DNA of 64,000 nt, from the NCBI GenBank assembly GCA_950097015.1, contig CATNEN010000001.1, positions 22,816,001 to 22,880,000 on the forward strand, in the 5' to 3' direction. Numbering within the stretch: the first letter of the stretch is position 1; each line of letters starts with the position of its first letter. The position numbers and the translations under genes were made by a program. This DNA comes from Macrostomum hystrix. Lineage: Eukaryota; Animalia; Platyhelminthes. The notes under the pieces are model-generated. The model was not told where the DNA came from and did no database searches. It saw only the letters and a list, made by a program, of their open reading frames with translations. Below are positions 4,493 to 44,575 of the stretch, piece after piece.

Positions 4493-6773
4493 ATGGGCAA
4501 CAAAGTGTCCCGCTGGATGCGCAACTATGACGCTGAGAGACGCGCCATGAAGCTGCTGTCGCGCACCGACAATGCACCAGCCAGAGCTCCGAGGTTCGAA
4601 TCCGAGCAGCAGCTGCTTCGCCAGATTGCCAAAGATCCCCTACTGGACGAAGCAATCAGTAAGAAGGACGCCAATCTGTTGCAGAATTTGAATCGGGTGA
4701 AGGTCGTCAGCTCCATTGACCCGGCAATGGTGCGCCAGCGGCAGCAGCCGACACAGTCGCACCGACCGCTGCCTCAGAGGCGACACTTTCTGCCTGTCGG
4801 AGAGTTGGGGGTGCCGGAAGTGGCGGCGGAAACTGTGCCACCTGGCAGGCTCACCTTGGTGCAGTTTCAGGTGGGTGCAATTACCTAAAGCACACAAAAG
4901 CAAACCTCTGAGCACACACGCTCGCGCAGGTGTGTAAATCTGTCCTGTCTTTCTGATCTCACTCTCACAGTGCCCTGGAGGTTGGTCCTCATTGGCGTAA
5001 TTTGCACAAGTCCCCAAGCCTTCCATTCGCGGCTGCGTCGCCAAATGAATGTGGGATCGAGCTCAGGGACCTTGGTGCGAGAGGCAATCGCGTTTGACTG
5101 ATCTGCCACTCACCTCCGCTATCGGAGTTTGACTCTGGGGAGGACACTGCATTCCTCATAGCTTTCCGTCACGAAGCTGTCAAAGGGATATCATTATTTG
5201 CTGTGTTTCATATTTGTGTAGGTGTTACGGCCCCTAGTCCATGGACTGAACAGCTGTACACAGTCTCACAAAAAGCCGCGCAATAGTTTCCACTGTCTAC
5301 GTCTACGCATCTACGCATCACCTTTCCCGTCTCCCTGTCTCATCTCTCCCGTGTCTTATCTCTCCCGTGTCTCATCTCTCCCGTGTCTCATCTCTCCCGT
5401 GTCTCATCTCTCCCGTGTCTCATCTCTCCCGTGTCTCATCTCTCCCGTGTCTCATCTCTCCCGTGTCTCATCTCTCCTGTGTCTCATCTCTTCCGTGTCT
5501 CATCTCTCCTGTGTCTCATCTCTCCCGTGTCTCATCTCTCCCGTGTCTCATCTCTCCTGTGTCTCATCTCTCCTGTGTCTCATCTCTCCCGTGTCTCATC
5601 TCTCCTGTGTCTCATCTCTTCCGTGTCTCATCTCTCTCGTGTCTCTTCTCTTCTGTCATCTCTTCCCTGTCTCATCTCTCCTGTGTCTCATCTCTCCTGT
5701 GTCTCATCCCTCCCGTGTCTCATCTCTCCTGTATCTCATCTCTTCCGTGTCTCATCTCTCCTGTGTCTCATCTCTCCTGTCTCATCTCTCCTGTGTCTCA
5801 TCTCTCCTGTGTCTCATCTCTCCTGTGTCTCATCTCTCCCGTGTCTCATCTCTCCTGTGTCTCATCTCTTCCGTGTCTCATCTCTCCTGTGTCTCATCTC
5901 TCCCGTGTCTCATCTCTCCTGTGTCTCATCTCTCCTGTGTCTCATCTCTCCTGTGTCTCATCTCTCCCGTGTCTCATCTCTCCTGTGTCTCATCTCTTCC
6001 GTGTCTCATCTCTCTCGTGTCTCTTCTCTTCTGTCATCTCTTCCCTGTCTCATCTCTCCTGTGTCTCATCTCTCCTGTGTCTCATCCCTCCCGTGTCTCA
6101 TCTCTCCTGTATCTCATCTCTTCCGTGTCTCATCTCTCCTGTGTCTCATCTCTCCTGTCTCATCTCTCCTGTGTCTCATCTCTCCTGTGTCTCATCTCTC
6201 CTGTGTCTCATCCCTCCCGTGTCTCATCTCTCCTGTATCTCATCTCTTCCGTGTCTCATCTCTCCTGTGTCTCATCTCTCCTGTCTCATCTCTCCTGTGT
6301 CTCATCTCTCCTGTGTCTCATCTCTCCTGTGTCTCATCTCTCCCGTGTCTCATCTCTCCTGTGTCTCATCTCTCCCGTGTCTCATCTCTCCTGTGTCTCA
6401 TCTCTCCCGCGTCTCATCTCTTCTGTCATCTCTTCTTTGTCTCAGTGATACTGTGACAAGTCTCTCCCCTATCTCATATTTCTACAGGCAATGCGGCCCG
6501 CAGGTTCTCTCTTTGGCCCGCTAGCTAATAAGTTTGCCGACCCCTGATCTATTAGGTCAGATTTTTAATTAGTATTCCTTTACTTACACCAATTAGGAGC
6601 TGTTAAACACCAAGCAGCCGCAGGGGGCCGGCCTAACGTCGGACATTGTGCACGAACTGCTGGAGTTCTACGCGCCGCTAATACAGCGCACGCCGGAGGA
6701 GCTGAAGCAGCTCGCGAGTGCGGAAGATGCGGCAAACCCGTCAGCTAACCCGAATAAAACTGATTTGAAATAA
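4493..6773 (+). CDS. NDUFAF4: Complex I assembly factor NDUFAF4 homolog; exons 4493-4870 and 6597-6773 (184 aa)
   Basis: MGNKVSRWMRNYDAERRA...APR, KKDANLLQNLNRVKVVS and PPGRLTLVQ match family motifs. CAG|GTGGGT and TTAG|GAG give a phase-0 join to ELLN...LLEFY. Confidence 0.85.
4912..5054 (+). repeat. Copy of a dispersed hairpin-containing repeat family (other copies at 21330, 25443, 27090, 49815)
   Basis: Shares GGTGTGTA...TTTCT...GGAGGTTGG...CGTAA.TTGCAC..CCCCAAGCCTT with the other copies. Confidence 0.7.
5335..6445. repeat. 16-bp satellite (GTGTCTCATCTCTCCY) in the NDUFAF4 intron
   Basis: Tandem array; three overlapping low-complexity ORFs are artefacts. Confidence 0.95.
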
Positions 6774-7725: not shown

Positions 7726-9300
7726 ATGTCGCTGGAACAACGACTTCGAGCAGCCCTGGAGGCTGGAGATGACGGGGAGCTGCTGGAGCTGTGTGCTCAG
7801 CTGGACAGCAATATCAGTCTGACTGTCCGTGGATATGACGACCAGCAGATGGGCCAACTGTCTCAGTCGGTGGCGCATCACGTGGCCTGCAAGTCCACGA
7901 GTGTGCAATGCCTGCAGCTGCTGATTGACAGATTCGGCTCTGGTTGTCTCACCTGTAAAAACTCCTGGGAGGAAACTCCAGTGCAGAGCGCCGCGGAGCA
8001 TCAGGACGAGTCGTGGATGCGGCTGATTCGGGACACTCTTGGCAAAGACTGCTTCAGGGCTAAGGATTGTTTCGGCAGAACAGCGGCTCATTACGCAGCT
8101 TCGAACACGAAGAGCAACTCGGCCCTGAAGTTTCTTGTAGACGAGTGCGGCAGCGACTGTCTGTTGGTGGCTGACAAGGTTGGCGACACTCCGGTTCACG
8201 CTGCAGCTCAGTACCAGGGCTCCGACTCGATGGAACTCATCGCCAGGCTGATTGGCAAGTCATGCTTCTCGAGGCGGGGCTGTCAGGATCAGACGGCCGC
8301 ACACCGCGCCTGCATGAACTTGACTGGCAGCTCGGCGCTGCAGTGGCTCCTGACAGAGTTCGGCAGCGGCTGCCTGACGGACACAGATCCCAGGAATCCG
8401 CCAAGTCATATCGCGGCAGAGTTCCAGGACGCTGGCACAATGGAACTGATCAAAGGCGAGCTTGGCAGCAAGTGCCTGCTGGAGCTGGACGGATCCAGAC
8501 AGACTGCGGTACACAGAGCTGCCATCAACAAGATCAGCAACTCGGCTTTCCGCTGGCTGCTTTGTGAGTTCGGGCCGGAATGTCTGCTGGCCAAGGATAG
8601 GCACGGCTGCACTCCCATCATGCTGGCCGCCCAGTTTCACAGCTTGGACTCAATGCAGGCTGTCAAAGACTTGCTGCTCAGCCAGTCTCAACTCCACCAG
8701 TTTGACAGCTGCAAGCAGCAGGTCATGGAATTTGCCGCAGTCAACACCGCGGACAACTCCGCTTTCAAGTGGCTCGTGTCGGAGTTCGGTAGCGAATGCC
8801 TGATTGCTCGCAGTAAATGTGGCGACACGCCTGTTCACCTGGCCGCTGAGAGGCAGACCGCCGACTCTCTTCAGTTCGCCTTGGATCAGCTGGCCTCCGA
8901 GCAGATCTTCTGTACCGCGGGTCTCGGCGGCTGTACGGTGAGTCACAAAGCCGCCATGAACCCAGCAGGCGATTCTGCGCTTCTCTGGTGCGTGCGGCGA
9001 CTGGGTCCAGCCTGCCTGCTGGTCGAGGACCTTCAAGGAGCCACAGCCGCTCACTTGGCTGCCAGGCACCAGGCAGTTGGCAGCCTCAGCCTCATCAAGG
9101 ACGTCCTTGGCGCTGGCGTTTTAGATCTGCTGGACAAGAGAGGCTGCGATCTCGAGGACTACATTGGGATGGACATCTACCAGAACAGGAGGTCCGGGAT
9201 GCTGGTCTGGCTGACCCAGACCAGGCAGCAGTTGGACTCCATGGAGGCCGAGGCGAGGCACCAGGAGGAGTGGAAGCTGCAGCAGTTGATGCGGAGCTGA
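7726..9300 (+). CDS. Ankyrin-repeat protein (524 aa, single coding exon); kinase-less paralog of 11060-13899
   Basis: Repeated GDTPVHxAA / RTAAHxAA ankyrin motifs in alternating pairs. N-terminus LEQRLRAALEAGDD...QLDSNISLTVRGYD matches the neighbouring gene. Confidence 0.9.
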   Translation: MSLEQRLRAALEAGDDGELLELCAQLDSNISLTVRGYDDQQMGQLSQSVAHHVACKSTSVQCLQLLIDRFGSGCLTCKNSWEETPVQSAAEHQDESWMRLIRDTLGKDCFRAKDCFGRTAAHYAASNTKSNSALKFLVDECGSDCLLVADKVGDTPVHAAAQYQGSDSMELIARLIGKSCFSRRGCQDQTAAHRACMNLTGSSALQWLLTEFGSGCLTDTDPRNPPSHIAAEFQDAGTMELIKGELGSKCLLELDGSRQTAVHRAAINKISNSAFRWLLCEFGPECLLAKDRHGCTPIMLAAQFHSLDSMQAVKDLLLSQSQLHQFDSCKQQVMEFAAVNTADNSAFKWLVSEFGSECLIARSKCGDTPVHLAAERQTADSLQFALDQLASEQIFCTAGLGGCTVSHKAAMNPAGDSALLWCVRRLGPACLLVEDLQGATAAHLAARHQAVGSLSLIKDVLGAGVLDLLDKRGCDLEDYIGMDIYQNRRSGMLVWLTQTRQQLDSMEAEARHQEEWKLQQLMRS

Positions 9301-11059
9301 CTGTTAGACTAGAGAAAGCTGGCTAGATTTCTGTTTCTTGAGACTTCTTTTTAAAGCCTTTTATTCATATTCGCCTACGCGAAGCTTCAAACTTGCTCTG
9401 CTCTCTAACTTCCTACTTAAGCATCGAGTAGACCAATTAAGCAGGTCGATATAGCCAAATAAATAATTTTTTTTAATTCATGTTTTATGTTAATTTTCAG
9501 AAATTTTGCTGCCACCGGCTTTTCCAAAATGTATTTTGTATTGAAAGACGATGTTTTAATGCACAGTATATAATATTGTTGCGTTGTGGCTTGCTAATAG
9601 TGGCATGCTAAAACGGCCCTTTTTCGGGCCACCGTTATAAATGCTTTACTGTATTATTAGCTTATGAATTTTTTTGCTGGCTACTGCTAGTAGACTAGTT
9701 TGTTCGTGCTGTTTATTTCTAAATATTGCTGTGTACAAATGATGAGACAGCTGCACACAGCCTCTTACAAGTTATGAATATTATGATTATTATTATTAAT
9801 TATACAGGCATCAGAATAGATTAGATCACAAAGCAGTATATTTTTGTGAAGCTACTATAAATTTAAAGTTGGTGAGTCGGTTAAAAACATGCAGCGAATA
9901 AGGTAGTATTTGGTGCAAACCACAATTACAAGGAAACAGAGAAAAGGCCGATTAAACATGTTAAGCAAACAATGAGTAAGTTACAAGCTATAATTGGCGA
10001 GATAATTTATAATTACCCACGATTTAAAAAAATCTGTGAATGATGACTGATTTAGGTCTAAAATGGTGAGCACAGTTCTCAAATTAGATGGCACCTTAAT
10101 CATCAGAATGTCAACACACACACGATCGGTGCGTCGTAGCAGCAGTTAGTCTACAAAACGTTCTATAAAATTGATTTAAAAAATTTGGCAAGTTTAAGTC
10201 CACGATGTACTCGTAAAAACCAAAATTTGGAAATATTCTCACTCGGTCACTCGCATAAGTCACTCAGTCTATTCTACTCTGGCCATGGGTAATTAGATTA
10301 TCAATCGATCAGTCAGTCATCAGTCACTCGGAAATTCATGAGTCAGTCGTTCATCACTCACTAGTCACTTAGTCATCATCACTCGGTGAGGAAGCGGTGC
10401 GGTTCTCGAACAAAGAGAACAAGAACCCGACAATGCTGAGTTGGCTGAGGGTTATTAGGTACAAGACCTACCTTATGATCAGGAGATACTCGGGATTAGA
10501 AGACTTTTGGGATCTACTTATGATCAGGAGATTTTTAGGATCAGAAGTTATTCGGGATAAAATACTTTTGGGATCTACTTATGATCAGGAGATATTCGGG
10601 ATCAGAAGGTATTTGGCATCAGAGGGCACTTCATCCCTTATCTTAGTAACGAAAAAGTTTCGACAGCTGTTTCAATAACAACAAACTAAAATCTCGAATA
10701 TATTTGCATCTAAACATTTGGAAAGGATAAAAATTTGTTAAGACATCAAAATTCTCAGAAGGCATACATCCATGAAGCTACAAAAATGTTTTCATCAGAT
10801 TGTTAGTCTGTAAGAAATACAGGTTTATACCTGTACCGTGAGTATCAAGGGATGAAATGTTCGAATTGAAGCATGTTCATTTTGTGAAATATTAAACAAG
10901 TAACGTTTCAAATATCTATTGAGTGTTACACACTTGTTATTTCTTGAAACCTTAACTATGTCATCGAAAATGTTTTTTAAAATGAACCTGGTTCCTAGTT
11001 CAAAAGCGACTTGGTCATGAGTCGCTCAGGCATCAATCCTTCAGTCAGAAGTTACTCGG

Positions 11060-13899
11060 CTACTCGATCAGGAAGCGGTGCCTCAGCAGCTCCTCGGTGT
11101 CCGCTCGCTGCTGAGGCTCCCAGACGACGCAGCGTCGGTAAAAGTCCCTCAGGGCCTCCGACATCTGGTCGGAAATCTGCGGCATGTCCTTGTTCTTGTG
11201 TCGCAGCATTGGGATCTGATGCCTCTGCAGATTCCCATTCGGAGGCTGCATCTCCGTCATCTCGAACACTGTGCAGCCGAACGCCCACACGTCAGACTTG
11301 ACCGAGTACTGGCAGGCCTCGTCACAGCCGAACTGCTCAGGGGCCATGAAGTGCCAGGTGCCGCTCGGGTTGTCGCTGAACCCGCAGGTGTTCTCGATCA
11401 CCTTTGCCAGGCCGAAGTCGATGAGCTTGATGACGCCCTCGTGAGTGAGCATGATGTTTGAGCACTTGATGTCTCTGTGCAGGACTGTTGGGCTCTGGTT
11501 GTGCAGGAAGTTGAGTCCTGAGCAGATCTGGAATGCGTCAAGCAGACTAGCTGGATGTCGCGTCATCCGATTTTGGTAACTCTGATATCAAATTCTTTCC
11601 CGATGTTCATGCATGCCTGCCTCACCTGTCTTGAAAAGTTCTTCACACCTGACTCCGGAAACGGCTTCTTCTGCCTCTCCATCAGCTCCGAGAGGCTGTG
11701 GCCCGACACCAGCTCAGTGAAGATGCAGAACCGACCGTCCTTGGCTCGCTCGCACTTCAGAAACTGCACAATGTTGCGATGCCGGATTTTTCTCAGGACC
11801 TCGATGCCCTGCCTCTCACGCTCGATGGCCTTCTCCAGCTCTGCCGGCTGCTTCGCGCCCGTCAGCTTGACGATCTTGACGGCCACAGTCTGGAAGCGGT
11901 CGGTGAGGGCCTTGTACACGGTGCCGAACCCGCCTGCACCGATTACCTGTTTCTTGCCGCCATCCAGGACAAAGTCCCACGTTGTGAAGCCGGGGTCCAG
12001 CACTGATCTGAAATTAAAGCAGCTGGTTGAGATCAAACAGACAGTGAACACGAGAATAGGCAGTAATGCTTCAACATACTTGGCTGAGGCTTCAGGAGAT
12101 GCAGCTGGTTCTTGTTGCTTCTTGACTGACGGCTGAGGCTGAGGCAACTGCTTTTGGCACGGCTGGCTCTCGATCCAGGCTCGTTTGCTGGACTTTCGGC
12201 CCGGATCCCAGTCCTTTTCCAAAAAGTCAGCCAGAGTCTGGCCTTGATTGTTCTTCAGTGAGAAGATTTGCGGTCCCAGTTCATCAGCCAAGAACTGCAA
12301 CGTGTCGACGCCCTGGAACACTGCAGCACGATGGATGGGCGTGTCACCGAAGTTGTCAGGAACTGTAAGGCAGTCACGTCCAAGCTCCTTGACAAACCAC
12401 TTCAACGATGCCTTTCCGTCTTTGTTAAACGCAGCAAAGTGGATCGCTGTTCGAGTACAGGAACCACCTTTCGGTAGGAAGCAGTCAGTTCCGAGCTCTC
12501 TTTTAATCATTTCCAGCGAGTCTACGCCCTGGTGCTTTGCGGCAAAATGGACGGGCGTGTCACCGTCTTCGTCAGGAACTGTAAGGCAGTCACGTCCAAG
12601 CTCCTTGACAAACCACTTCAACGATGCCTTTCCGTCTTTGTTAAACGCAGCATAGTGGATCGCTGTTCGATTATAGCAACCACCTTTCAGTAGAAAGCAC
12701 TCAGTTCCGAGCTCTCTCTTAATCATTTCCAGCGAGTCGACGCCCTGGTGCTGTGCGGCAAGATGTACGGGCGTGTCACCGTTTACATCAGGAACTGTAA
12801 GGCAGTCACGTCCAAGCTCCTTGACAAACCACTTCAACGATGCCTTTCCGTCTTTGTTCAACGCAGCATAGTGGATCGCTGTTCGATTATAGTAACCACC
12901 TTTCAGTAGAAAGCAGTCAGTTCCGAGCTCTCTCTTAATCATTTCCAGCGAGTCGACGCCCTGGCGCCATGCGGCAAAATGGACGGGCGTGTCACCGAAG
13001 TTGTCAGGAACTGTAAGGCAGTCTCGTCCAAGCTCCTTGACAAACCACTTCAACGATGCCTTGCCGTCTTTGTTACACGCAGCAGAGTGGATCGCTGTTC
13101 GAGTACAGGAACCACCTTTCGGTAGGAAGCAGTCAGTTCCGAGCTCTCTTTTAATCATTTCCAGCGAGTCTACGCCCTGGTGCTTTGCGGCAAGATGGAC
13201 GGGCGTGTCACCGATTACATCAGGAACTGTAAGGCAGTCTCGTCCAAGCTCCTTGACAAACCACTTCAACGATGCGTTGCTGTCTTTGTTACACGCAGCA
13301 TAGTGGATCGCTGTTCGATTCCAGCAACGACCTTTCAGTAGGAAGCAGTCAGTTCCGAGCTCTCTTTTAATCATTTCCAGCGAGTCGGCGCCCTGGTACT
13401 GTGCGGCATGATGGACGGGCGTTTCACTGTCTTTGTCAGGAACTGTAAGGCAGTGGCTTCCGCGCTGCTTGATGAGCCACTTCAGCGATGAGTTTGTTTT
13501 TCTGTTTCTGGCTGCATAGTGAGCGACGGTTCTACCTGAATCTGCTGTCTCATCAAGGCAGTCCTGTTCCAGAAAGCTGCAGATCAGCTCCAGCCACGTC
13601 TCGTCCTGGTGCATCGCGGCGCAGTGCACTGTTGTCTCGCGCTGTTCATTTCTACTGCTCAGGCAGTCGGCCCCGACCCTTTCGATGAGCATCTGCAGGC
13701 TCTGCCGACTTCGCATCTTGCAGGTCACGTGATGCGCGACTGACTGAGTTCGCTCGTTGTTACAGAACGGTTTATTCCAATTGAATTCTCTGTCGTAGCC
13801 GCCGACCGTCAGCTCGAAGTTGGAGTCGAGCTGCTTGACGAGTCGCTGCAGCTTTTTGTCGTCTGCGGCCTCCAGCGCATCTCGCAGCTGCTGCTCCAT
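11060..13899 (-). CDS. Ankyrin-repeat + MAP3K/STE11-like Ser/Thr kinase; exons 13899-12080, 12007-11626, 11527-11060
   Basis: About 14 ankyrin repeats, then [38 protein letters not shown] introns of 72 nt (in-frame, inferred) and 98 nt (joins the two ORFs: RQ|ICSGL). Confidence 0.9.
12330..13500 (-). repeat. Coding tandem repeat, 216-bp unit (72 aa = two ankyrin repeats), ~5.5 near-identical copies
   Basis: TCAGGAACTGTAAGGCAGT recurs at 216-bp spacing (e.g. 12356, 12572, 12788). Confidence 0.95.
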
Positions 13900-14663
13900 G
13901 GAGCTATGAGTTGGTTGCTAGGTGAGCCTTTTTTAAGAAAAATACTTTTTCCGGTCTTTAAGGAAATTTTTTTAGATCTCACAGGGTTGTGTTTTCATCT
14001 CAACTTTTATTTCTGTCTTTGCTCGCAGGCGAGCTTATAGAAAAGTGCCACTTCAAGCTCGAAAAGCGGACTGAGGGCTTAAAATGGTTTTTTGTGGAGA
14101 GTGTAGGAGCGTGCAACATTGTGCTAATATTGTATTGTATTGCATAGTCCAGTGAGCAGAACAATTTACTAAATATATAAATGGGCTGGATTGGCAGAGA
14201 GTACATGATATAGATTAGGATGAGGGTAAATAAAAGAGTGAATTAACCTGAGATTGAGCAGTCTGTTTTTTCCAAGTAGAAAGTCTCAATTTGTGATTTT
14301 AACGATGCATTTTTCTAACTTAAACTTTTGTGCAACACAGTTTGACTCACAAGCTTGACTAAGGGTGTAGATAATGGCTATCGGCTTGTTTCAGAATTTG
14401 ATGGCAGTCTTGGCCATAGACAATTGTACCTTGCACCACACTCGGTAGCTTTGGCTAAGACTAGAAGCCCAGGTACAGGAAATCACAAAAAATAAGGCGA
14501 GAAGGCTGGCACTCACCTCACGGCTAGCCTACTGAGAAGCGAAAGAATTCACAAAAGTTGTGGCACGAAACACAAGAGTTCCCACACGAGATCGGAGGCC
14601 TACCAGAGCCACACAGATTCACAGATTACTTAGCAGTAGCCGAGTCAGCTCAAATTCAAGAAA

Positions 14664-16910
14664 ATGCGAGAGATTGTTCACATGCAGGCCGGCCAGTGCG
14701 GCAATCAAATTGGTGCCAAGGTAATTTCTTTCTGATATACTTTCTTCTGAAAAAGCCCCAAAGATTTTGTACTTTAGCATTATAACGATTCTGATTTTCT
14801 GACAGTTCTGGGAGGTGATCTCAGACGAACATGGCATCGACCCCACCGGAACGTACCACGGAGACTCTGATCTGCAACTGGAACGCATCTCAGTTTATTT
14901 CAACGAGGCCGCCGGCGGAAAGTATGTCCCCAGAGCCGTCCTGGTCGACCTGGAACCGGGAACCATGGAGAGTGTCAGGGCCAGCGCCTTCGGCATGCTG
15001 TTCCAGCCAGATAACCTGGTGTTTGGCAAGAGCGGAGCTGGTAACAACTGGGCCAAGGGCTACTATACCGAGGGCGCCGAGATTATCGAGAGGGTCATGG
15101 ACGCCGTTCGGAAAGAGTGCGAAGGCTGCGACTGTCTTCAGGGCTTCCAGCTTACACACTCGCTTGGGGGCGGCACCGGCTCTGGGCTAGGCTCGCTGCT
15201 GCTGAGCAAGATTCGCGAGGAGTACCCGGACCGAATCGTAACGTCCTTCTCAGTCGTGCCATCGCCCAAGGTATGAGCAACTTATTATTAACTGATTTGG
15301 ACTAATAATCGAGGTAACCAGAATTCAGGATGAAATTAAGTTTTAGGAAACGTGACACCATTCGTTTAATTATTTTGCTAGAATTTCGAAATTGGCACGC
15401 CGAAAAAGTACTTTCAGATATTTCTAAAAAACCAAAATACTACTGAGTTCATTTTTACTCTCCTAAAAAAGCGATTGTCTATGATCCCATCTAGGAATTC
15501 TTGATTTCAAGCAGAAATTTCTATACAAAACTATTGTAGTTAGCCTACGCGTGTTGAAACGAGGTTGTAACTATCGGCAGCCCGCCCTCTGCTGTTGTCT
15601 ATGGTCAAATTCCATAGATATGCACAGCGGGCGGGACGTGAAACGCGTTTCACGCCCGCTAACTACAATATACCAATATTGATAGGCTGCTCGGGCTGAA
15701 ACGAGGTGAAATGCCTCGGCGCTACGCGCCTCAACGTTTTACTTCGTTTCAGCCCTCTGCAGCCTATTAACATTGGTATATTGCACTAATTGCAATAGCT
15801 TTGCTCGAGCTTTAATTCCGAGACCAGACCATATGATGTAATGGTGTAATGTACCACAGACTACCGATTCCTCGCTCTGAAGGCGCCAATTAAAAGTCTC
15901 TAAAATAAGCAATCGGATTTTATTTCCCGCTCGCCCGGGGCGATAAACGGAACTTTTTATCATCGACAGCTCACAAGCACAAGCATGACACATACACAGA
16001 GCAGGCAAATGGGGGATACATCCGATTTATTAATTTATGTATTTAGCTATTCTACTCAATGACAAAGGCTTATATGCTTTAAAAATCCAACACTCAGGTT
16101 TCCGACACTGTCGTTGAGCCCTACAACTGCATGCTGTCACTGCACCAATTGGTTGAAAACACCGATGAGACCTTCTGCATTGACAACGAGGCTCTGTACT
16201 ATATCTGCTTTCACACACTGAAGCTCAGCTCGCCCAGCTATGCAGACCTGAACCATCTAGTCAGCGCTGCCATGTCCGGCACCACCACTTGCCTGCGATT
16301 TCCTGGCCAGCTGAACGCCGACCTACGCAAGCTGGCAGTGAACATGGTGCCCTTCCCTCGCCTGCACTTCTTCATGCCCGGCTTCGCGCCCCTGACATCC
16401 CGTGGCAGCTCCAGCTACAAGCAGGTGAATGTGGCCGAGCTCACTTTGCAGATGTTCGACGCCAAAAACATGATGGCCGCCTGCGACCCCAAGCACGGCC
16501 GCTACCTCACCGTCGCCGCCATCTTCCGCGGCCGCATGTCAACTAAGGAGGTCGACGAGCAGATGCTCAACCTGCAGAACAAGAACAGCTCCTACTTTGT
16601 GGAGTGGATTCCTAACAACGTGAAGACAGCCGTGTGCGACATTCCCCCGCGTGGCATGAAGATGTCCGTCACTTTCATCGGTAACTCCACGTCCATCCAG
16701 GAGCTGTTCAAGCGAGTTTCCGAACAATTCAGCGCTATGTTCAAGCGGAAGGCCTTCTTGCACTGGTTCACAAACGAGGGCATGGACGATCACGAGTTTA
16801 TGGAGGCTGAGTCCAACGTCAACGACTTGGTGTCGGAGCTGCAGCAGTACCAGGATGCCACAGCCGATGATGAGGGAGAGTACGAAGAGGAGGAAGAGGA
16901 GCTGGAGTAA
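14664..16910 (+). CDS. TUBB: Beta-tubulin, divergent isotype (444 aa); exons 14664-14720, 14806-15270, 16098-16910
   Basis: [24 protein letters not shown] and [11 protein letters not shown] motifs, acidic tail, GT-AG phase-0 junctions. Confidence 0.97.
15534..15785. mobile_element. Double-hairpin palindromic non-autonomous element (MITE/Crypton-like) in tubulin intron 2
   Basis: Inverted pairs TGTAGTTAGC/GCTAACTACA and ATATACCAAT...ATTGGTATAT. Second copy at 56200-56400. Confidence 0.7.
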
Positions 16911-19361: not shown

Positions 19362-22300
19362 ATGTCTCTTAGCGGCTCGGAGCGATCAGTTCACAGCGAC
19401 CAGCCGCGCCAGTCGCGCACCCGGCGTCGCAAGCTGTTCCGCCGACGCGACAAGCGATCTCGCAGCTCGGAGCGCTACGAATTCAGTGACCTAGAGGATG
19501 AATTGTTCGTACGCGGCCCACGCAAGCTCCGGCGTGAGGATGTCGAAGGAGAGCTGAGCTACGACTACACGAATCCAGGCAGCCTGAAAGTGTTCACAGC
19601 CGGCCTGAATCGCTGTGCCGGCTTGCCCGAGTTTCGCACCGTCCTCGTCTCAGCGGCTTCCACCGCCGCCGATGTCATCAGCGACGTGCTGCAGCGCTGC
19701 GACATTCTCTATGGAGATTCGGACGAGTTCTTCCTGTGCGAAGTAATTGGGCAGCTGGAGCCATAACAGCCGCATCAGCTGCTCAATCATCACCACCACG
19801 GACAGCCCGAACCAATGCAGTTCGTGGAGCAGTGCCGCCGTATCATTGGACCCGAGGAGCACGTTCTAGTTATTCAGGCGCTGTGGAAGCCGCTGTATGG
19901 CTGCTACCGACGATTCGAGCTAAAACAGGTCACACTAGACGAAGCGAAGAACACCAGACGACGTCAGGATCGACGAAGGCGCCGGCGCGTCCAGCTCTGG
20001 CGGTCCGGCGAGCTCTCTGGCCACGGAAATCTTGACGGACGAGGCGACAGCGACAGCGATGATGATCGAAGGCTGCACGAAGGAACGCCGCCGAAAAGGC
20101 TGTGCTGCCAGGCGGCAACGCAGGTTGAGCCGGGAGATCCGCCCACACAGGCAAGGGGTCGCACCCGCGGATTCGGTACCCAGACCGAGACGGTCTATTT
20201 TCCCAGCGTCGACCGACGGTCGAGCAAGAAGTACCCCGTCCCGCTCGGTCCGTACCTTCTCCTGCTTAAGGGTTTCGACTGTCGAAATGACCTGCTGGTT
20301 AACGACCTCTACGATGCCAATCTGATGGGCAGCGACGATCGCAAGTGCGACATTCATTTGCGCTGCGCCGATGTTCAACCGCAGCACTGCATCATTGAGG
20401 CTTGTCACAGCGAGATATACGACAATGAAGCTGGCAAGAGCGTGAAGCCTTACTGCATGTCTCTGGCTCCCGTTGGTGGGGCAGAAGTCCTTCTGAATGG
20501 TCAGCTGATCGATCGGAAGCACGTCCTATCGCCTGGTGACGTCATCTCGATCGGAGCCGGGGAGATGTGTTCATACGTGTTCATGTTCAAAGACACCTCG
20601 CAGGTGCCCGACAGGTCGATCGGGCTGGCCTGGCTGATGTTCCTAGAGTCCGCTCAGCGTTCCATCGATATTCAACAGCTGCTCGATGGAAGCTGCGTCG
20701 GCGATGGAAGTATTCGACAGGAAAAGTCAGAAGCGTCGAGAGCGGCTGCGAGTTCGTTTGTGAGCACCAGCGTGCCTTCGGACTCCGTGCTGGACACACC
20801 GTGCAACGAGACAGCGTCGATTTGCGGCGCTGACTCGCGAGACGCCGACGCTCATCAGCTGGCGCAGGCCAGCCTCGGCAGCCTGCTGGCTCTGTACTTC
20901 GGCGAGTCCGTTGATTTGAATTTCGCCGCTGGCCTTCTCGTCCTGCTGACGGTGTACGTGGCCGACCTGGAGCTTGAACGGGCCGGGGCTGAGATTCAGT
21001 GGCACATTAGCGACTCGGCCGTCACGCTGGCCAAGAAGGCCAGTCAAATGCAGGACCGGCGCGACAAGGCGCAGTGCTACTCAGATTTAATCCGGGCCTG
21101 CGCCCTGGCCTTCGAGATTTTCCTGTTCTTTCACGAGGTCTGCGGCGACGGGCTCACAGCTGCGGTTGTGCGCTGCCAGCCGTGGCGCGACTTCTGCGAG
21201 ACCACCATGCAGCAGATGCTGGACAGCATCTTCAGCCAGCTAGGCGAGGTGCGAATACCCACCAGCATAGATTAAGCGAATCTATGAAGTCATAATAATA
21301 TAATAATAATTGCAGGAGGGCTGCGGGCAATGGCACATCATTTGGTGACACTAGACCCGCAGCCAGCGTAGAGGCAATGCAGCCCATTCCGCTGACTCGA
21401 TTAAATCGATTAACACGGATACCGTACAACAGTAAAAAATTATTCACACAAGTGTGTACATCAGCCCTGACTTTCTCATCGTCAGGCAGTGTACAATCTT
21501 ACTGTGTCTTGGAGGTTGGCCCTGAAGTGCGTAAATTGCACGACAAGCGTCCAAGTCTTCTCTCCGTGGTACCTTGAGATCGTATCGTATCGATCGATCT
21601 CAGGGACATTGGTACGAGAGGCAAACCCCTCTGTCGCTTACCGGCAATCAATCAAGTCCTTTCCTTAATACGAGCGTATAATTTCTTTTCGTAAATTGGG
21701 AAATCTCAAAACCTAACATTGATTTATCGTTTTTTAGATTTCTTGAATCCATTTTTTGCAGTTTTTTAGAAATCTTAGTTAAAAATTGTATGAGTAGCTT
21801 ATATAATTCCTACTTTCGACGAATCCAGGTTTCCTAGAATCCAGGTTTCTTAGAATCCAGGTTTCGTAGAATCCAGGTTTCTTAGAATCCAGGTTTCTTA
21901 GAATCCAGGTTTCTTAGAATCCAGGTTTCATAGAATCCAGGTTTCGTAGAACTCAGGTTTCGTAGAATTCAGGTTTCAAAGAATCCAGGTTTCTTAGAAT
22001 CCAGGTTTCGTAGAATTTAGTTTTCGTAGAATTCAGGTTTCAAAGAATCCAGGTTTCTTAGAATCCAGGTTTCGTAGAATCCAGGTTTCATTGAATCCAG
22101 GTTTCATAGAATCCAGGTTTCGTAAAATCCAGGTTTCGTAGAATTCAGGTTTCATAGAATCCAGGTTTCGGAGAATTCAGGTTTCGTAGATTTCAGGTTT
22201 CATAGAATCCAGGTTTCTTAGAATCCAGGTTTCGTAGAATCCAGGTTTCATTGAATCCAGGTTTCATAGAATCCAGGTTTCGTAAAATCCAGGTTTCGTA

Positions 22301-25300
22301 GAATTCAGGTTTCATAGAATCCAGGTTTCGTAGAATCCAGGTTTCTTAAAATCCAGGTTTCTTAGAATCCAGGTTTCTTAGAATCCAGGTTTCATAGAAT
22401 CCAGGTTTCGTAGAATTCAGGTTTCGTAGAATTCAGGTTTCAAAGAATCCAGGTTTCTTAGAATCCAGGTTTCGTAGAATTTAGTTTTCGTAGAATTCAG
22501 GTTTCAAAGAATCCAGGCTTCTTAGAATCCAGGTTTCGTAGAATCCAGGTTTCATTGAATCCAGGTTTCATAGAATCCAGGTTTCGTAAAATCCAGGTTT
22601 CGTAGAATTCAGGTTTCATAGAATCCAGGTTTCGGAGAATTCAGGTTTCGTAGATTTCAGGTTTCATAGAATCCAGGTTTCTTAGAATCCAGGTTTCGTA
22701 GAATTCAGGTTTTGTAGAATTCAGGTTTCATAGAATCCAGGTTTCAAAAAAATCCAGGTTTTAGAGAATTCAGGTTTCGTAGAATTCAGGTTTCGTAGAA
22801 TTCAGGTTTCCTAGAATCCAGGTTTCATAGAATCCAGGTTTCATAGAATCCGGGTTTCATAGAATCCGGGTTTCATAGAATCCAGGTTTCGTAGAATTCA
22901 GGTTTCGCAGAAACCAAGTTTCCCAGAATCCAGGTTTCATAGAATCCGGGTTTCCTAGAATCCGGATTTCCCAGAATCCTTGTTTCTTAGTTCTTAATAA
23001 TTCTAGATTGGAAGAGGCCTGGTTACTTAATTATTATATATTACTTAATACTGCATACGAGCATCTTACTGGTCAAAGTTTTTTTAAGAATGTTTTTTTA
23101 TCCCATGTTTCGACTCGAATACAGGTTTCAAATTCTAGAATTCGTAGTTTAAGATAATTGTCTGTTAGAACTAACGAAGTTCAAAGCAGATAAAGTGCTG
23201 GACAATGTTTATATTGAAATCAGATTTTACACATTTTAGGAAATCATAGCTGAAAGTTCAGCACTTTGCGACACGGGTCTCGTCAGCGCCACCAGCAGTT
23301 CTGAGCCGCAGAGCAGCATGCAGCGATTCCTGACTGTGCTCACTCAGGTCAGCCAGACGTTCAGCAGTGCCAAGCAGTACCAGTGCGTGAGCACCCTCAG
23401 ACTCATGATCATGAAGAGGCTGGTGTTCCAGGTGGGAAAGAACTTCACTATGAGAATCTTCGGCGGAGGTGAGCGCTTAAAGGGATTTGTAAAATTAAAA
23501 ATGGTGTCTAACATATTAATGTCAAAAAGGTTTGAGTCTGACTGGTTCGTGTCTAACAGGTTTGTGTCTAACAGGCTCGTGTCTAACAGGTTCGTGTCTA
23601 ACAGGTTAGTGTCTAACAGGTTAGTGTCTAACAGGTTTGTGTCTAACAGGTTCGTGTCTAACAGGTTAGTGTCTAACAGGTTAGTGTCTAACAGGTTAGT
23701 GTCTAACAGGTTAGTGTCTAACAGGTTAGTGTCTAACAGGTTAGTGTCTAACATGTTTGTGTCTAACAGATATATGTCTAACCGGAATGTCTCGTAGAGT
23801 TATTTGTCTAACAGTTTTTGTCTAACATTTTTTGCCTAAAAAGGTTAGTGTCTAACAGGTTAGTGTCTAACAGGTTAGTTGTCTAACAGGTTAGTTCTAA
23901 CAGGTTAGTCAAACTTTTATCTTACCTTTTTAACGGTTTTTTTAAAAGTGTTTCACGGTTTTGGGTAAGTTAATTTGTCACAGTATCTAACAGATTTCTC
24001 TGAAATGGCTTAAAAAATTTCCCAATAAAAAACTTTATCACAGATCCGGCAAATTTTCTAAAGTGGAACTGCGCGGTCCAACTGCGAGTCAACCTGGACC
24101 AGCTGGAAGAGTGGCTGCGTGAGGAGGCTCTCGAGCAGTTCCTGCCGGCGCTGGATTTGCCAAACAGCATCGTGGACTTGCTGGCCACGACCAAGGCACG
24201 ATTGGTGTCTGTGAGTTTAACAGCTGCGTGGCTTTAGATTGCTGACATCAACCTGTTTGACAAAAACCTGTTAGACACCGACCTATTAGACACCGACCTG
24301 TTCGACACCAACCTGTTAGACGCAAATCTGTTAGACACCAACCGGTTTGACGCAAATCTGTTAGACACCGACCTGTTAGACACCAACCTATTAGACACCA
24401 ACCTGTTAGACACCAACCTATTAGACACCAACCTATTAGACACCAACCTGTTAGACACCAACCTATTAGACACCAACCTGTTAGACACCAACCTGTTAGA
24501 CACCAACCTGTTAGACGCAACCTGTTAGACACCAACCTATTAGACGCAAATCTGTTAGACACCAACCTATTAGTCGCAAATGTGTTATGCACCAACCTGT
24601 TAGACACCAACCTGTTAGACACCAACCTGTTAGACACCAACCTGTTAGGCACCAACCTGCTAGACACCAACCTGCTAGACACCAACCTGTTAGACACCAA
24701 CCTGCTAGACACCAACCTGTTAGACACCAACCTGTTAGACACCAACCTGCTAGACACCAACCTGTTAGACGCAAATCTGTTAGACACCAACCTATTAGTC
24801 GCAAATGTGTTATGCACCAACCTGTTAGACACCAACCTGTTAGACACCAACCTGTTAGACACCAACCTGTTAGGCACCAACCTGCTAGACACCAACCTGC
24901 TAGACACCAACCTGTTAGACAACAACCTGTTAGACAAGAACCTGGTAGACACCAACCTGTTAGACACCAATCTCAGAATTTCTCCACTCTGTGCACATGC
25001 CCAATCAGACAAGCTGGCAGCAACTGCGCAAGCAATACCCGCTGATTCCACCGAGCATGCTCCACCGCATCATGCTGGAGTTCGAGTCCAGGTCAGGTCC
25101 GATGGGCGCATTGTGGGCTGTGCCGAGTGAAGACTCCGGAGAGGCGGCCTACAATGGTAAGTCTAGAGTTTCCTTGACATTTTTATAGGAATATTTTGCT
25201 TGCTTTCAGTTTTTTAAGTTCAACCTAGAACAGTAAAAACTATCCGTAACATTCAGTGACCTGCGCAATCGAGGATCACTTTCAACTGGCCATTGTGAAC

Positions 25301-28140: not shown

Positions 28141-28689
28141 ATCATTCCTATCATTGATGCATTAACAAAGAGACATACTACTACAAGAAATAAGTTAAGA
28201 TTTAAACCTTCGCTTTAGGTTGAGAAAGAATAAAAGAGATTGTCAGCTAGATCTGTCACGATAATGTGATGTTGTACATTAAAATAGGATTAATAATGCG
28301 AGGCTAGACTAGTACACCCTTGAGAATTTGAGCTGCATTTGAACAAAATATCAAATAGTCTACAGATCTAATAGCCAAAGCCTCACCAGTCCCACCCACC
28401 CTTCTCTCTGCACCTGGCAGGGTGACTTGTTGTCATTAGCAACGAGAAAGGCAGATAGGGTGAGAGAGTACGCAGAGCGAGCTCATTCCGCAGCTATTAA
28501 ACGTTGCAAAGCAGAAGAAGGAAAGAGAGGGAGAAATTCAATGTACACTGGAAGAAGCAGAGAACATAAGCAGATAGGCACAGAGAACGGATTGCTGGCA
28601 GAAAGTAAGAAGCAACGGGAAAAGGCCAGCTACCTACTGAAGTTTGAAGGCATCTTCCTGACCGTCCAGCAGGCCAGTAGTTGAGCCAA

Positions 28690-31600
28690 ATGGAGGAAAG
28701 CGTCGGCCAGGTGCTCCTAAAGGTACAGGACGACTTGGGTCGCCTACGCGAGCAGCTGGAAGCCGCAGCTGTAGTCGCAATCGACGCTGGCAGCCCGAGC
28801 AGCGCGGCTGCCCGATTCGACGCCAGGGCGCTGCAGGAGGCGCTGGCCAAGGCCGAGACGGATCTGCGAACACGGTCGAACGACGTCCTGAGCCGCGTCC
28901 AGGTGGCGCCCGTGCACCTGCCGCAGATTCAAAAGCAGCAACAGCTGACGATACGACGTCCGGAGCATGTGCAGCAGCAGCAGCAGCGGTACCAGCATGA
29001 ACCGCTGCCTACGGTTATCTCAGCCAAGGACTACAAAGGTGGCCTCCTCGCCCTGATGGAGCGGGGCTCCATTCCACCGGACGCCAACGTTGTCCTGGAT
29101 CCACAGCCCATTCGACATCGGCCGGCGCCGGTACACGACCCCGGAACTCGTCCGCGAGATCGATTCCCGGCCGATGCGGCGGATCCGGGCTACACACACG
29201 AGGGCTACCAGCTGGACGAGACCAAGCCAGCGAGACAGAACGGCGCGGTGACTGCGAAACTGAAATTCAAGACGTCGAGCAACAGCCCCGGCAATGTTCG
29301 AGTGCAACAATTCGAGCCGCCGATGCTTCGCTCGCGTTCAGCAGCCGACCGGGTGATGCATCATCAGCCGCCGGTGGCTGCAGCGGCTGCTCCCCAGGCA
29401 GCGGCAGCAACCGCAGTAGCGGCAGCAGCGCCACCACGCGAACAGTCTGCCGCGGCGGCGCCGCCGCCACCGACAACGCCTGCGTCGTTTGCTGTGGCAT
29501 CGAGAGCTGGTGCTCCGAGCGCAGTGCGTTTCAGCATCCAGAACGGCAAGGCCAGACGCGAGGCCAGCGACTTTCTGGCCTTCCGACGTCGCTGCGAGCA
29601 ACTGGATGGCGTCCAGTGGCCGCTTATCGAGTGCCTGTTGGAGCAACTCGAGCGACTGATGCAACGGTTTTCGATTCCGCTGGCCCAGGTGAACGGGGAG
29701 CTCCTGTGCGATCTGGCCGAGCTCACGGAGCCTGACACCACCTCGACTGACGATTTCGAGTTGCTTGATTGTGTGATGAATCGAGCCGATGTGCTCAAGC
29801 TGATGAGGCGGCCAGGCAGGCAGTTCGTCGGTCCGGGGGGCTCCGATCGAGCGGCCCTCGTTATTCAGAAGAGATGGCGAGGCTATCGAGCTCAACGGGA
29901 CTACCTGAAGCACCGCAGGCGAAATCAAGCAGCCAAGGTGATCGCCGAGCAGTGGAAGAGGTACAGCCGCCGGCTGGAGATTCGAGCGCTGCTCAAGCGG
30001 AGTCGTCAGGCGCACCTGGACGGCTACAAGCGGCGATTCTCATCGATGCAGGAGCTCTGGGATAAGTGGAGCGGCAAGCGGCGCATCATAATTCATCTGC
30101 CATCGCTGGGCTACCCGGAGAAGATCCGTGCAGGATTTCCTTGCTTCAGCCGCGTGCAGAATACGCAAATGGCTCGCCTGTGCGACATTCGCGATCTAAA
30201 TGTGGACGTAGTTCTACTTTCAGCAGTCGCTATTGACGACGAGATGACGCAGTACTATGATCGCTTATTGTCGCGACTGTCCACAGATGGTCAGAAGTCT
30301 CAGCACCAGCAGCAGCAGCAGCAGTCAGTGTCCAATCGATTCAAAATCATTGTTCCCGAGGCCGCCAAGTTCTTTGCCGACCGGAGCATACCGCTGGCCA
30401 CACTGCTCAATTACTCACCAAGAGCTCTGAGAAGAATAAGAAATCTTATTCAGGTGCGAGTGAAAACCATTTTTACTTTTTTGATGGACTTAAATGATGT
30501 AAAATGCATAATATAAGTGTAATTACACCTGCCCTAATCGGGCCAGATGTGCAGCCGACAGCACAGCCACAGCATTGCACAGCGCATCTGAAGGCTGCGT
30601 ACAGCTGTTCAGTCCATGGACTGGGGGACCCCACACCCGCCCTCAATAATCTCAGCTGATGCTAGTACCCAATTTACCGCTGGGGTGAACTGAAGTAATG
30701 CATAATTAAGTATTTTAATAAAGGACACAGTTTTTTCCACTGGAGTCGGGAATCGAACCCCTGACCTTAAAGTCGACGCTTTAACCCCTAGGCTACAGCT
30801 CTGTCGTGTCGTTTACAGTAATTCATGCACGTTTGAATACCGATAATAAATTTGTACAATAACTATTGCCAGCTTGTAGCGCAGTGGTTGTAGCATCGTA
30901 GTTCTGACCGAGAGATCCGGAGTTCGAATCCCAGTCCAAGGGAAACAGTTTGTGGCCTTGAGCAACAGACTTACTTACCTGGTGCGTCAGTTCACAAGTG
31001 CTATTGTCTTAACCTCGATGCAAAAACCACCCGATCGCGCTTTAACAGGGCCGACCAGCCTTCATCGTGCCGGGCTATCCGTGCCAAGACGACCTGGCCG
31101 TGGCCAACAAGCTTGACGTGCCGATCCTGTGCCCCGAGCCGCAGGTCGCGCAGCTGTACAGCACCAAGTCCGGAGCCAGGCGTATATTCCGCGCCGCGGG
31201 AGTGGCCGCTCCACCAGGCGACTTCGACATCTACTCGATGACGCAGCTGCTGGACAGCCTGTCCCAGCTCATCACTTCCAATCTCAGCGTCACCCGGTGG
31301 CTGCTGAAGCTCGACTCGCAATTCGACGGTCGCGGCATCGGCTTTGTGGACGTCGACAGGCTGCCCTGCTACCGGTGGGCCCTGCGCGAGCGACGGCGCT
31401 ACGGCGACAAGTGGGAGAAGAAGTGGGCCCAGGAGAAGGTTCTGCTCCGGGTGCACGAGGAGCTGCCGGAGCTACTCGCTTCGCCGGCTGCCCAGGTGGC
31501 CTGTCCCGATGCCTACTCCGATTGGGAGGCCTTCCAACAGGAGTTTCTCTCCCAGGGCGGGGTAATCGAAGCCTGCCCAGCAGCCGAATCTGTCACTCGG

Positions 31601-32371
31601 CTCACTGTCGACCTGTGCATCGAGCCATCAGGCTGGGTCCGCCTGCTGTCCAGCGGAGACCAGCTGCTGAGCGCCAGCCAGCCGTTCGCCTGCCTCGGCA
31701 TCTCGTCGCCTCAGTGCAGCGTCGCTCCGTCGCAGCTGAACGACCTCTGCCGCCGGGTTGGCGACGCCTGCCGCGAGCGACACATCTACGGCCACGCCAG
31801 CGTAGACTTTGTCACCTTCGAGTCGGACTTCGAAGCTGGCCGTCAGGAGCTGTGGGCCACCGACCTCAGCCTGCACTACAGCGACACGGCCGCCCTGTCC
31901 CAGCTGTTCTACTTGGCCACGGCTGGCCGCTTCGATCCGGAGCAGCACGAGGTTCTTGTCGATCAATCGAAAGTCGGCATCGACAAGTCAAAGTCGATTG
32001 TTTCTAGACGTCTGCAAAGAGATCGAGGCCGACGCTACGCCACAATGTCCAGCCGGCTGCGGCACAGCAACCTGTCCCAGCTGCAGTTCTCCGCATTCTT
32101 CAAGGTCTGCAAGGCCCACGGCATCGAGTTCGACACCCGGTCGCGGGTCGGGAGTCTCTTCTGCCTCGTGGATCCGTTCAATCGGGACGCTGTCGGCATG
32201 GCAACCATTTCGTCCGATCTGCTCACCTCACTGGAGACCTTCGCCAGAAACTTGACCGTGCTCAACCAGGAGGTGACGACTCCCACAGACTTGGGCGACA
32301 GCAATTTTGATGGAATCATTGAAGAACTCGACGAGGTCATCAGCGCGGCGAAAGAGAATGCCAAAGCATAG
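28690..32371 (+). CDS. IQCH: IQ motif-containing protein H homolog; exons 28690-30453 and 31049-32371
   Basis: N-terminal VGQVLLKVQDDL; IQ motif IQKRWRGY; IIIHLPSLGY...QNTQMARLCDIRD; ATP-grasp-like C-terminal half (YSTKSGARRIF, GGVIEACP). Phase-0 CAG|GT...AG|GGC junction. Confidence 0.9.
30527..30800 (-). mobile_element. CORE-like SINE in the IQCH intron
   Basis: Collinear similarity with 27222-27490. Confidence 0.75.
30873..31000 (+). mobile_element. Second SINE (head + CORE-like part), head-to-head with 30527-30800
   Basis: TGTAGCGCAGTGG A-box, GGAGTTCGAATCCC B-box, then GGCCTTGAGCAA...CTTACTT. Confidence 0.65.
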
Positions 32372-44540: not shown

Positions 44541-44575
44541 CCCAGGAGGGGCGGTCCGTGCGGCTATCTGCTGGC

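Follow-up and report, generated by a model that had tools for sequence, protein, structure and literature searches.

In animals, the zinc-finger minisatellite of PRDM9 has units homogenised by concerted evolution and ligand-contact residues under strong positive selection. Ankyrin (ANK) repeats and a kinase share one polypeptide in ILK, TNNI3K, RIPK4/ANKK1 and DAPK1, and the ANK repeats of ILK and TNNI3K are N-terminal. In fungi, highly internally conserved ANK, TPR or WD40 repeats are found in NOD-like receptors (NLRs) such as HET-E/HET-D/HNWD and Podospora Pa_3_8560 (Dyrka et al. 2014, PMC4986451). The ANK repeats of these NLRs are under positive selection at the inner helix and the hairpin, on the concave face, and highly internally conserved repeats occur in only 0.8% of metazoan ANK/TPR/WD repeat proteins (PMC4986451). 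ANK-caspases have been described as a feature of parasitic flatworms only, in a paper that mentions neither homogenised repeats nor hypervariable sites (PMC11463336). Here, we analysed a window of 64,000 nucleotides from Macrostomum hystrix (GenBank assembly GCA_950097015.1, contig CATNEN010000001.1, positions 22,816,001 to 22,880,000), which contains a gene for an array of near-identical ANK repeats joined to a kinase. In this array, the hairpin tips and one face of helix 1 gain amino-acid changes 3-5 times faster than synonymous sites. We consider it probable that the gene encodes an expressed, germline-encoded, cytosolic ankyrin array with variable faces on an active STE-group kinase, and that its groove is a fast-evolving protein-binding surface. 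A preliminary description, made from the letters of the DNA, had proposed such an array for an invertebrate, and the host is indeed a Macrostomum flatworm.

Tandem Repeats Finder placed the array at 12304-13490 of the window with a period of 216 bp, 5.5 copies, 90% matches and no indels, in agreement with the 5.5 or so units and near-invariant framework given in the preliminary description. The minus-strand open reading frame (ORF) of 778 amino acids (aa) at 13899..11563 stays open through every unit, and six in-register 72-aa units start at aa 138, 210, 282, 354, 426 and 498. Each unit consists of two non-identical 36-aa ANK repeats, the first of the type D-xx-GDTPVH-x-AA-xx-QG and the second of the type G-xxx-RTAIH-x-AA-x-NKDG, and the motifs GDTPVH-AA and RTAIH-AA are present in every unit. 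When the 216-bp units were aligned, units 2-5 were 90.7-95.8% identical in DNA (~93%) and 84.7-93.1% identical in protein (mean 87.7% over 288 aa), and unit 1 was ~86% identical to this core in DNA. An amino-acid change among units 2-5 was found in 12 of the 72 columns (19, 20, 27, 30, 31, 47, 51, 55, 56, 57, 63 and 66; that in column 47 is D/E), and seven other codons vary synonymously only. The residue strings that had drawn attention to these variable sites, which apart from column 47 are hereafter called hot sites, are all present, both in the first ANK (KD/VI/NF/VN/ED/NF and H-QY/L-KH/F-WR/L-QH/F-KH/R-VF) and in the second (CWN/SCT/YYN/CYN/SCT and Y-C/S-C/Y-L/Y-F/F-F).

To place the array in a gene model, contigs of public runs were aligned to 10900-14100, where X1 is a DNA run and X2 and X3 are RNA runs from two studies, all three examined as short-read contigs. 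X9 comes from a related organism that is ~94-96% identical and also spliced. The features of the gene are as follows, in window coordinates, with AlphaFold2 (AF2) helices and predicted local distance difference test (pLDDT) scores from the model of exon 1 described below.

11060..14038, minus strand: transcribed ANK-kinase gene, with the ATG at 13899, the stop at 11060-11062 and a 5′ untranslated region (UTR) to at least 14038
extending below 10900, minus strand: 3′ UTR of the ANK-kinase gene, from RNA contigs X2 and X3
13489..13899, minus strand: N-terminal cap and one diverged double-ANK unit (aa 1-137), matched by the unit hidden Markov model (HMM); AF2 helices H54-146
13273..13488, minus strand: unit 1 (aa 138-209), 85-87% identical in DNA to units 2-5
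12409..13272, minus strand: units 2-5 (aa 210-497), the homogenised core, with boundaries at 13057, 12841 and 12625
12193..12408, minus strand: unit 6 (aa 498-569), of which the first ANK matches the repeat (hot residues NF, R, VF)
12080..12192, minus strand: low-complexity linker and end of exon 1; AF2 pLDDT <50 at residues 582-603
12008..12079, minus strand: intron 1, 72 nt, GT..AG, absent from the X2, X3 and X9 RNA contigs and present in DNA run X1
11626..12007, minus strand: exon 2, kinase N-lobe (GAGGFG glycine loop, VAVK lysine); Pfam PF00069 E=1e-15
11528..11625, minus strand: intron 2, 98 nt, GT..AG, absent from the X2, X3 and X9 RNA contigs
11060..11527, minus strand: exon 3, kinase C-lobe ([20 protein letters not shown]) and stop; Pfam PF00069 E=3e-35

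The DNA run X1 is colinear with the genome over the locus. With introns removed, the RNA contigs of X2 and X3 cover 13357-14038 and 10900-12366. Since exactly both introns are spliced out in these contigs, the gene is transcribed and has three coding exons on the minus strand (13899-12080, 12007-11626 and 11527-11060), which by arithmetic amount to 889 codons. The 889-aa protein consists of ~15 ANK repeats, followed by a linker and a STE-group kinase, and the second ANK of unit 6 has diverged into a C-terminal cap. The array is thus wired directly to the kinase, as had been proposed, both being in one spliced transcript. Intron 1 is in frame and stop-free, and in the long ORF it adds a 24-aa hydrophobic segment between the ANK array and the kinase. 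A transmembrane helix in this hydrophobic stretch ([21 protein letters not shown]) was considered and rejected, since the stretch is intron 1 and is removed in RNA. As a signal peptide is also not evident by eye, the protein is predicted to be cytosolic.

The unit-specific first hot patches of units 2, 3, 4 and 5 were each found with 0-1 mismatch in the X1 DNA contigs and the X2/X3 RNA contigs. Recurrence of these patches in DNA and RNA runs that are independent of each other shows that the array is no assembly artefact, one of the outcomes that the preliminary description had said would undo its proposal. The short-read contigs end within the array, so that the number of units comes from the long-read assembly only, which leaves some room for an artefact or a pseudogene. 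With a frame open across all units, both introns correctly spliced in RNA and a kinase that differs from that of the sister taxon X9 only synonymously, we find this explanation hardly credible.

We next consider where the variable sites lie. Pfam matched the array to Ank_2 (E=5e-41), Ank_4 (E=6e-34) and Ank (E=2e-28). The AF2 model of exon 1, built from a 21-sequence alignment, has a mean pLDDT of 88.9 and a predicted template modelling score of 0.82, and shows 15 helix pairs in one solenoid, with an additional short helix after helix 2 in each repeat and a disordered linker. In the N-terminal cap region pLDDT is >90 except at residues 40-46. The best Foldseek matches to the model are NOMPC, ankyrin-1, AnkB and designed ankyrin repeat proteins (DARPins), with E down to 2e-17, and TRPA1 and latrotoxins are also among the matches. 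In unit 2 of the model, columns 19-20 are in the middle of the loop before helix 1, and columns 55-57 lie in the next hairpin, between its two bridge residues. Helix 1 contributes columns 27, 30 and 31 as its positions 4, 7 and 8, which share one helical face (i, i+3, i+4). In the second ANK, column 63 is likewise position 4 of helix 1, and column 66 directly follows that helix. On this model, the variable columns would form the hairpin tips and the inner-helix face of the ANK binding groove. The proposal that the differences fall on concave-face and beta-turn residues is therefore borne out at the level of a predicted structure. Hot positions are 38% aromatic compared to 8% elsewhere.

The DARPin positions randomised by Binz and colleagues in 2003 are reportedly 2, 3, 5, 13, 14 and 33. 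When positions are numbered from the TPLH motif, columns 19, 20, 30, 31, 55, 56 and 66 correspond to DARPin positions 2, 3, 13 and 14. We used as an a-priori hot set the 12 columns that correspond to all six positions in both ANKs, invariant ones included. Seven of the 12 variable columns fall in this set, and the set holds 13 of the 19 extra amino-acid states of the focal gene (column-label permutation, p=6.5e-5). The same permutation gave p=3e-3 for a paralogous ANK-kinase gene at C39:18424249-18427536 (L002, L033), which has about eight homogenised 71-aa units with 90.1% amino-acid identity.

Codon-level tests were performed on these two arrays of the M. hystrix genome, and minimal codon changes were counted along the pathway with the fewest nonsynonymous steps. 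In units 2-5 of the focal gene, the a-priori hot codons carry 15 nonsynonymous changes and no synonymous changes, and seven synonymous changes were pooled over the 72 columns. The resulting ratio of nonsynonymous to synonymous rates (dN/dS, or omega) at hot codons is 3.7 (p=0.003), and that of the framework is 0.31, which falls to 0.11 once positions 4 and 10 are counted as hot. In the C39 paralog (7 units), omega at hot codons is 4.7 (p=0.004). A pairwise Nei-Gojobori estimate agrees, with a dN of 0.31 at hot codons vs a dS of 0.10. A dN/dS of 1 or less at the variable sites, which would have spoken against the idea of a diversifying surface, was thus found in neither array.

These results bear on whether the pattern is a neutral by-product, that is, whether a very recent 216-bp amplification gained its first substitutions where the ANK fold tolerates them, without positive selection. 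The hot columns are in fact also among the most variable family-wide (background entropy of 2.97 vs 1.94 bits), and the samples are small, both of which speak for such a process. However, omega at the a-priori codons is significantly above 1 in two independent arrays, and several hot codons carry 2-3 nucleotide changes compared to at most one at synonymous sites. In addition, among the 30 columns with a family-wide entropy (H) of >=2.5 bits, only the binding-face ones vary in homogenised arrays (mean H of 1.09 vs 0.21, p=6e-4), while the 21 others, equally unconstrained family-wide, stay almost invariant within arrays. We therefore regard a neutral origin as improbable. Four arrays show this restriction of variation to the binding face, whereas an older array that is not homogenised (L007) does not. 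L007 corresponds to a 1022-aa ANK ORF at C41:2470947-2473607 (L004/L007; C41:2.47 Mb), in which three of the 12 double-ANK units have the same protein sequence and the others vary at all columns; no kinase or caspase match was found nearby. As its variation is spread over all columns, L007 was rejected as a replicate of the binding-face pattern.

The synonymous sites of the core also show how the units are related to one another. The biallelic synonymous sites of the four core units show every one of the three 2:2 partitions that are possible, so that the four-gamete test fails:

column 11: {2,3|4,5}
column 18: {2,4|3,5}
columns 34, 41 and 49: {2,5|3,4}

Since these three partitions fit no single tree without recurrent mutation, the units have recombined with or converted one another, which agrees with the repeat shuffling proposed in the preliminary description. 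We conclude that recent duplication, together with recombination or gene conversion between units, holds the core units at ~93% DNA identity. The C39 paralog has one pair of identical units, 3 and 5, and a second pair, 4 and 6, in which a single codon, that of the hot H-x-AA, differs (TGG/ATG); this points to a very recent two-unit duplication followed by a hot-site change.

Repeats of this architecture are recombinogenic, and the germline gene could in principle be a template rewritten from donor units, as in the variable lymphocyte receptors (VLRs) of lampreys or in gene conversion of chicken immunoglobulins. We searched the whole assembly (220,453,370 bases, 42 contigs) with the DNA of units 2-5, and only the locus itself and one paralog at 76% identity were found. 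With no further DNA copy of the units, there are no donor cassettes in the genome, and the hot patches read from RNA contigs of two studies agree with those of the genome to within one mismatch. The donor-cassette or somatic model was therefore rejected, and we consider diversification of this type very improbable. By the same search, a donor-cassette library of the kind that would mark a somatically assembled, VLR-like receptor class was not found.

The genome was further searched for relatives of the array, and a collection of its paralogs was among the checks named in the preliminary description. About 20 loci contain the 72-aa double-ANK unit, and in at least seven of them the units are followed by a kinase of the same type; no other locus has >48% protein identity to the core units. 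Outside the genome, the close protein matches are all from Macrostomum lignano, with <=57% identity, after which E drops from 1e-65 to 1e-19 (generic ANK proteins). In an exhaustive HMMER search, every match looked up with >=40% identity was likewise from M. lignano, with the addition of one 991-bp metagenome fragment, and the remaining matches were generic long ANK proteins. From these searches, the ANK-kinase family appears to be restricted to Macrostomum, and no orthology to known animal ANK-kinases was found by the protein and HMMER searches, in which all close matches are from Macrostomum.

In M. lignano, for which the evidence is at the protein level, the caps and the kinase are shared by at least 12 co-orthologs, which have 1-4 internal units each; these differences in unit number are between genes and are not proven alleles. 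Across the 31 units of these co-orthologs, the framework is 93% identical between genes and the hot columns are 45% identical, and 30 distinct hot-site words were counted. Framework identity between M. lignano and M. hystrix units is 73%, compared to 93-97% within species, which suggests concerted evolution or independent recent expansion. In a second M. lignano group, one homogenised array type is found on a kinase (P0003) or on caspases (P0016, P0021 and P0023; P0021 matches Peptidase_C14 with E=1e-42). The same regime is thus present in one paralog and two M. lignano gene groups, with modular effectors, kinase or caspase.

A shorter evolutionary distance is covered by X9. Its kinase exons show four synonymous and no nonsynonymous differences from the focal gene. 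Its unit 6 has a different residue at each of the three hot codons 27 (R>L), 30 (V>Q) and 31 (F>R), through five nucleotide changes, and further differs by I25V, T36S and one synonymous change. Since the depth of the X9 contigs is low, we use this comparison as supporting evidence only.

These comparisons are relevant to whether the array is an endogenous scaffold that docks a fixed set of the animal's own proteins, with units specialised per partner and the hot differences left by past subfunctionalisation. The grooves of ILK, TNNI3K and ankyrin-B each accommodate several endogenous partners, complexes of ankyrin-1 and AnkB are among the fold matches, and the focal gene is single-copy in the genome and identical in the three runs, all of which would suit a scaffold. 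A stable partner set, however, predicts that hot residues are conserved between species, and their replacement disfavours it: all three hot residues of unit 6 are changed in X9 next to a kinase with synonymous changes only, and the M. lignano co-orthologs carry 1-4 units with almost as many hot-site words as units. Unit turnover is also ongoing, as seen in the identical units and the single hot-codon difference of the C39 paralog. We consider a scaffold of this type rather unlikely.

With regard to the effector, the kinase carries the glycine loop, the lysine, [21 protein letters not shown] and GTWHFMAPE. All catalytic motifs, among them the HRD...N loop, DFG and APE, are thus present, and the kinase should therefore be active. 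The best solved matches of the C-lobe are TNIK, STK24/25, MAP4K4, SLK, TAO2 and PAK (E 6e-25 to 1e-21), and ASK1, a MAP3K, is slightly behind (E=4e-20); the N-lobe exon alone matched no solved structure at E<=1e-8. The GT..FMAPE loop resembles the STE20 signature. Since STE20/MAP4K kinases score above ASK1, an assignment to the STE group, probably STE20-like, is better supported than the MAP3K-like kinase of the preliminary description, in which the presence of a kinase was right and the subgroup was not favoured by its nearest solved relatives. By Pfam, the ORF of exons 1-2 and exon 3 contain ANK and kinase families only, with no NACHT, NB-ARC or any other domain. The exons were searched separately.

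At least 47 paralogs of the kinase C-lobe exon have the same exon shape (ORFs of 170-200 aa), and many of them are clustered at C1 22-26 Mb. Some stand behind other ANK-type N-termini (L043). The closest kinase paralog (C1:14.887 Mb, 67% identity) has no ANK ORF within 6 kb upstream.

Caspase genes are also frequent in this genome, with ~80 caspase-domain matches in total. A tandem cluster of six caspase genes (PF00656) is found at C1:22730900-22749000 (L049, L050), 67-85 kb before the window. Their N-terminal regions are 95-275 aa long, mostly 240-275 aa, without a Pfam match; no ANK domains were found in the six genes, so that the cluster gives no direct link to the focal gene. At C1:23924000-23933900 (L048), one strand carries, in this order, two ANK-like ORFs, the N-lobe and then the C-lobe of a kinase, and the p10 part of a caspase with the motif QACRG, which may be an ANK-kinase-caspase gene or tightly linked genes. 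Kinase and caspase are likewise adjacent at C38:8.74-8.78 Mb. An M. lignano caspase with a kinase-like pro-domain has been mentioned (PMC11463336). Double-ANK units of the same type also precede a long, channel-like C-terminal region with multiple hydrophobic segments (L025, L026; P0129, P0136), and P0129, a protein labelled as coming from a Kangiellaceae metagenome-assembled genome, looks like a mis-binned flatworm-type gene.

Within the window, the convergent neighbour of the focal gene is a paralog:

7726..9300, plus strand: ANK-only paralog of 524 aa, with Pfam ANK and unit HMM matches

This gene has the same 72-aa double-ANK units, not homogenised and without a kinase, with ~37-43% identity to the core units. 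Other, ordinary genes on the plus strand encode a beta-tubulin (14815-16910), an FHA-domain protein (19815-21275) and an IQCH-like ATP-grasp protein with an IQ motif (28681-32371), and a Na/K-ATPase beta-like protein is encoded on the minus strand (38415-39446). An intact-looking retrotransposon lacking long terminal repeats (non-LTR) at 40836-46063 on the minus strand has a 1234-aa ORF (endonuclease, reverse transcriptase and RNase H) after a 495-aa ORF1. Satellite arrays occupy 5222-6524, 23318-25130, 32694-33557, 54256-54783 and 57038-64000; the last of these reaches the end of the window and has a GC skew of -0.97, with hardly any G on the plus strand.

In the reading that we favour, the concave groove would be a fast-evolving protein-binding surface in which the units share one scaffold and each presents a patch of its own, rich in aromatic residues. 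The groove would bind a ligand that changes rapidly, and binding would switch the kinase through clustering or through release from autoinhibition; the switched kinase would feed into a MAPK-type or cell-death pathway. Candidate ligands could be derived from pathogens or from a selfish element, or be another conflict-type partner. The design would then be that of a fungal NLR repeat domain without the nucleotide-binding oligomerisation domain (NOD) module. A more specific proposal, which we put forward tentatively as possible, is that these proteins are the Macrostomum counterpart of fungal receptors with highly internally conserved repeats, without NOD: lineage-specific intracellular sensors of innate immunity or conflict, with a fast-diversifying array as ankyrin paratope directly on a kinase or caspase and a repertoire generated by unit shuffling and gene duplication. 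Their targets may be pathogens, selfish elements, or foreign sperm or seminal proteins after hypodermic insemination.

Several points weigh against a diversifying binding surface. The counts are small, with 4-7 units per array, and recombination makes a tree-based correction impossible. An omega above 1 could arise partly from old differences that selection keeps at hot sites while conversion erases the rest, although such retention is still selection for diversity and not necessarily an arms race. The mapping of variable sites to a surface is derived from secondary structure and helix periodicity, not from coordinates. The gene has no near-identical copy in the genome, which means a small repertoire here. 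Finally, the hot patches are the same in three runs and no variation in unit number is visible; the reference line SR1 is inbred, with F~0.998 (PMC10468722).

The possible significance lies in the link between a recognition surface and an enzyme. A homogenised repeat framework with a hypervariable binding face is characteristic of the NLRs that serve fungi as non-self receptors, and DARPins are designed on the same principle. Here, one array type on a kinase or caspase offers a testable example of a possible sensor class that would link a recognition surface to a MAPK-type or cell-death output without a NOD. Macrostomum is experimentally tractable, with RNA interference and transgenesis in M. 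lignano, so that the family could open flatworm innate immunity or conflict biology, and its units are also a set of DARPin-like binders that nature has built on a single scaffold. Should the ligands prove to be ordinary partners from within the animal, what remains is an interesting example of concerted evolution.

The closest described systems can now be compared with this locus. The designed proteins share with it a constant consensus framework that is varied in the hairpin (positions 2 and 3) and in helix 1 (positions 13 and 14), and they are found among both its sequence and its fold matches. Unlike them, the Macrostomum array is natural, has 36-aa repeats with an extra short helix after helix 2 and pairs of non-identical ANKs, and varies in the focal gene at positions 4 and 10 too and barely at positions 5 and 33. 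A bacterial-type protein (P0142, metagenome and NCBI) has ~20 ANK repeats of 33 aa, near-identical to one another and varying mainly at positions 2, 3 and 13, and is a prokaryotic case of the homogenised-framework pattern. PRDM9, the best-known parallel in animals, differs in its C2H2 zinc-finger fold, its binding to DNA and its methyltransferase effector. In ILK, TNNI3K, RIPK4/ANKK1 and DAPK1, the kinases are TKL or CAMK and the repeats have diverged, whereas the focal kinase is of the STE group and its repeats are homogenised with hypervariable faces. In the flatworm ANK-caspases, too, an ANK pro-domain is attached directly to an enzyme of signalling or death, and the arrays of P0021, P0016 and P0023 of M. 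lignano are homogenised; the focal gene differs in bearing a kinase. The ANK-caspase paper (PMC11463336) was the only one found in the literature on Macrostomum and ankyrin, and we found no description in the literature of a homogenised, hypervariable-face regime for ankyrin arrays on animal signalling enzymes.

The fungal NLRs are the nearest in regime. Common to both are near-identical tandem repeats (>85% over >100 aa), recombination of units, positive selection on the concave face and effector domains swapped modularly on one kind of repeat array. By the definition of Dyrka et al. (2014), the mean identity of units 2-5 over their 288 aa is high enough for highly internally conserved repeats, and diversifying selection at binding-face positions and inter-unit recombination or concerted evolution were found as well. 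Unlike in fungal NLRs, the Macrostomum array is N-terminal and sits directly on a kinase, or on a caspase in sister genes, without NACHT or NB-ARC, and the host is an animal. Fungal NLRs are known for non-self recognition and repeat-number polymorphism, whereas the Macrostomum gene is likened to them by its sequence regime. Since the defining NOD domain is missing, the gene works like fungal NLRs and is not a member of that family. Overall, the array is a real animal instance of the hypervariable repeat regime of fungal NLRs, and one for which we found no earlier description in ankyrin arrays on signalling enzymes.

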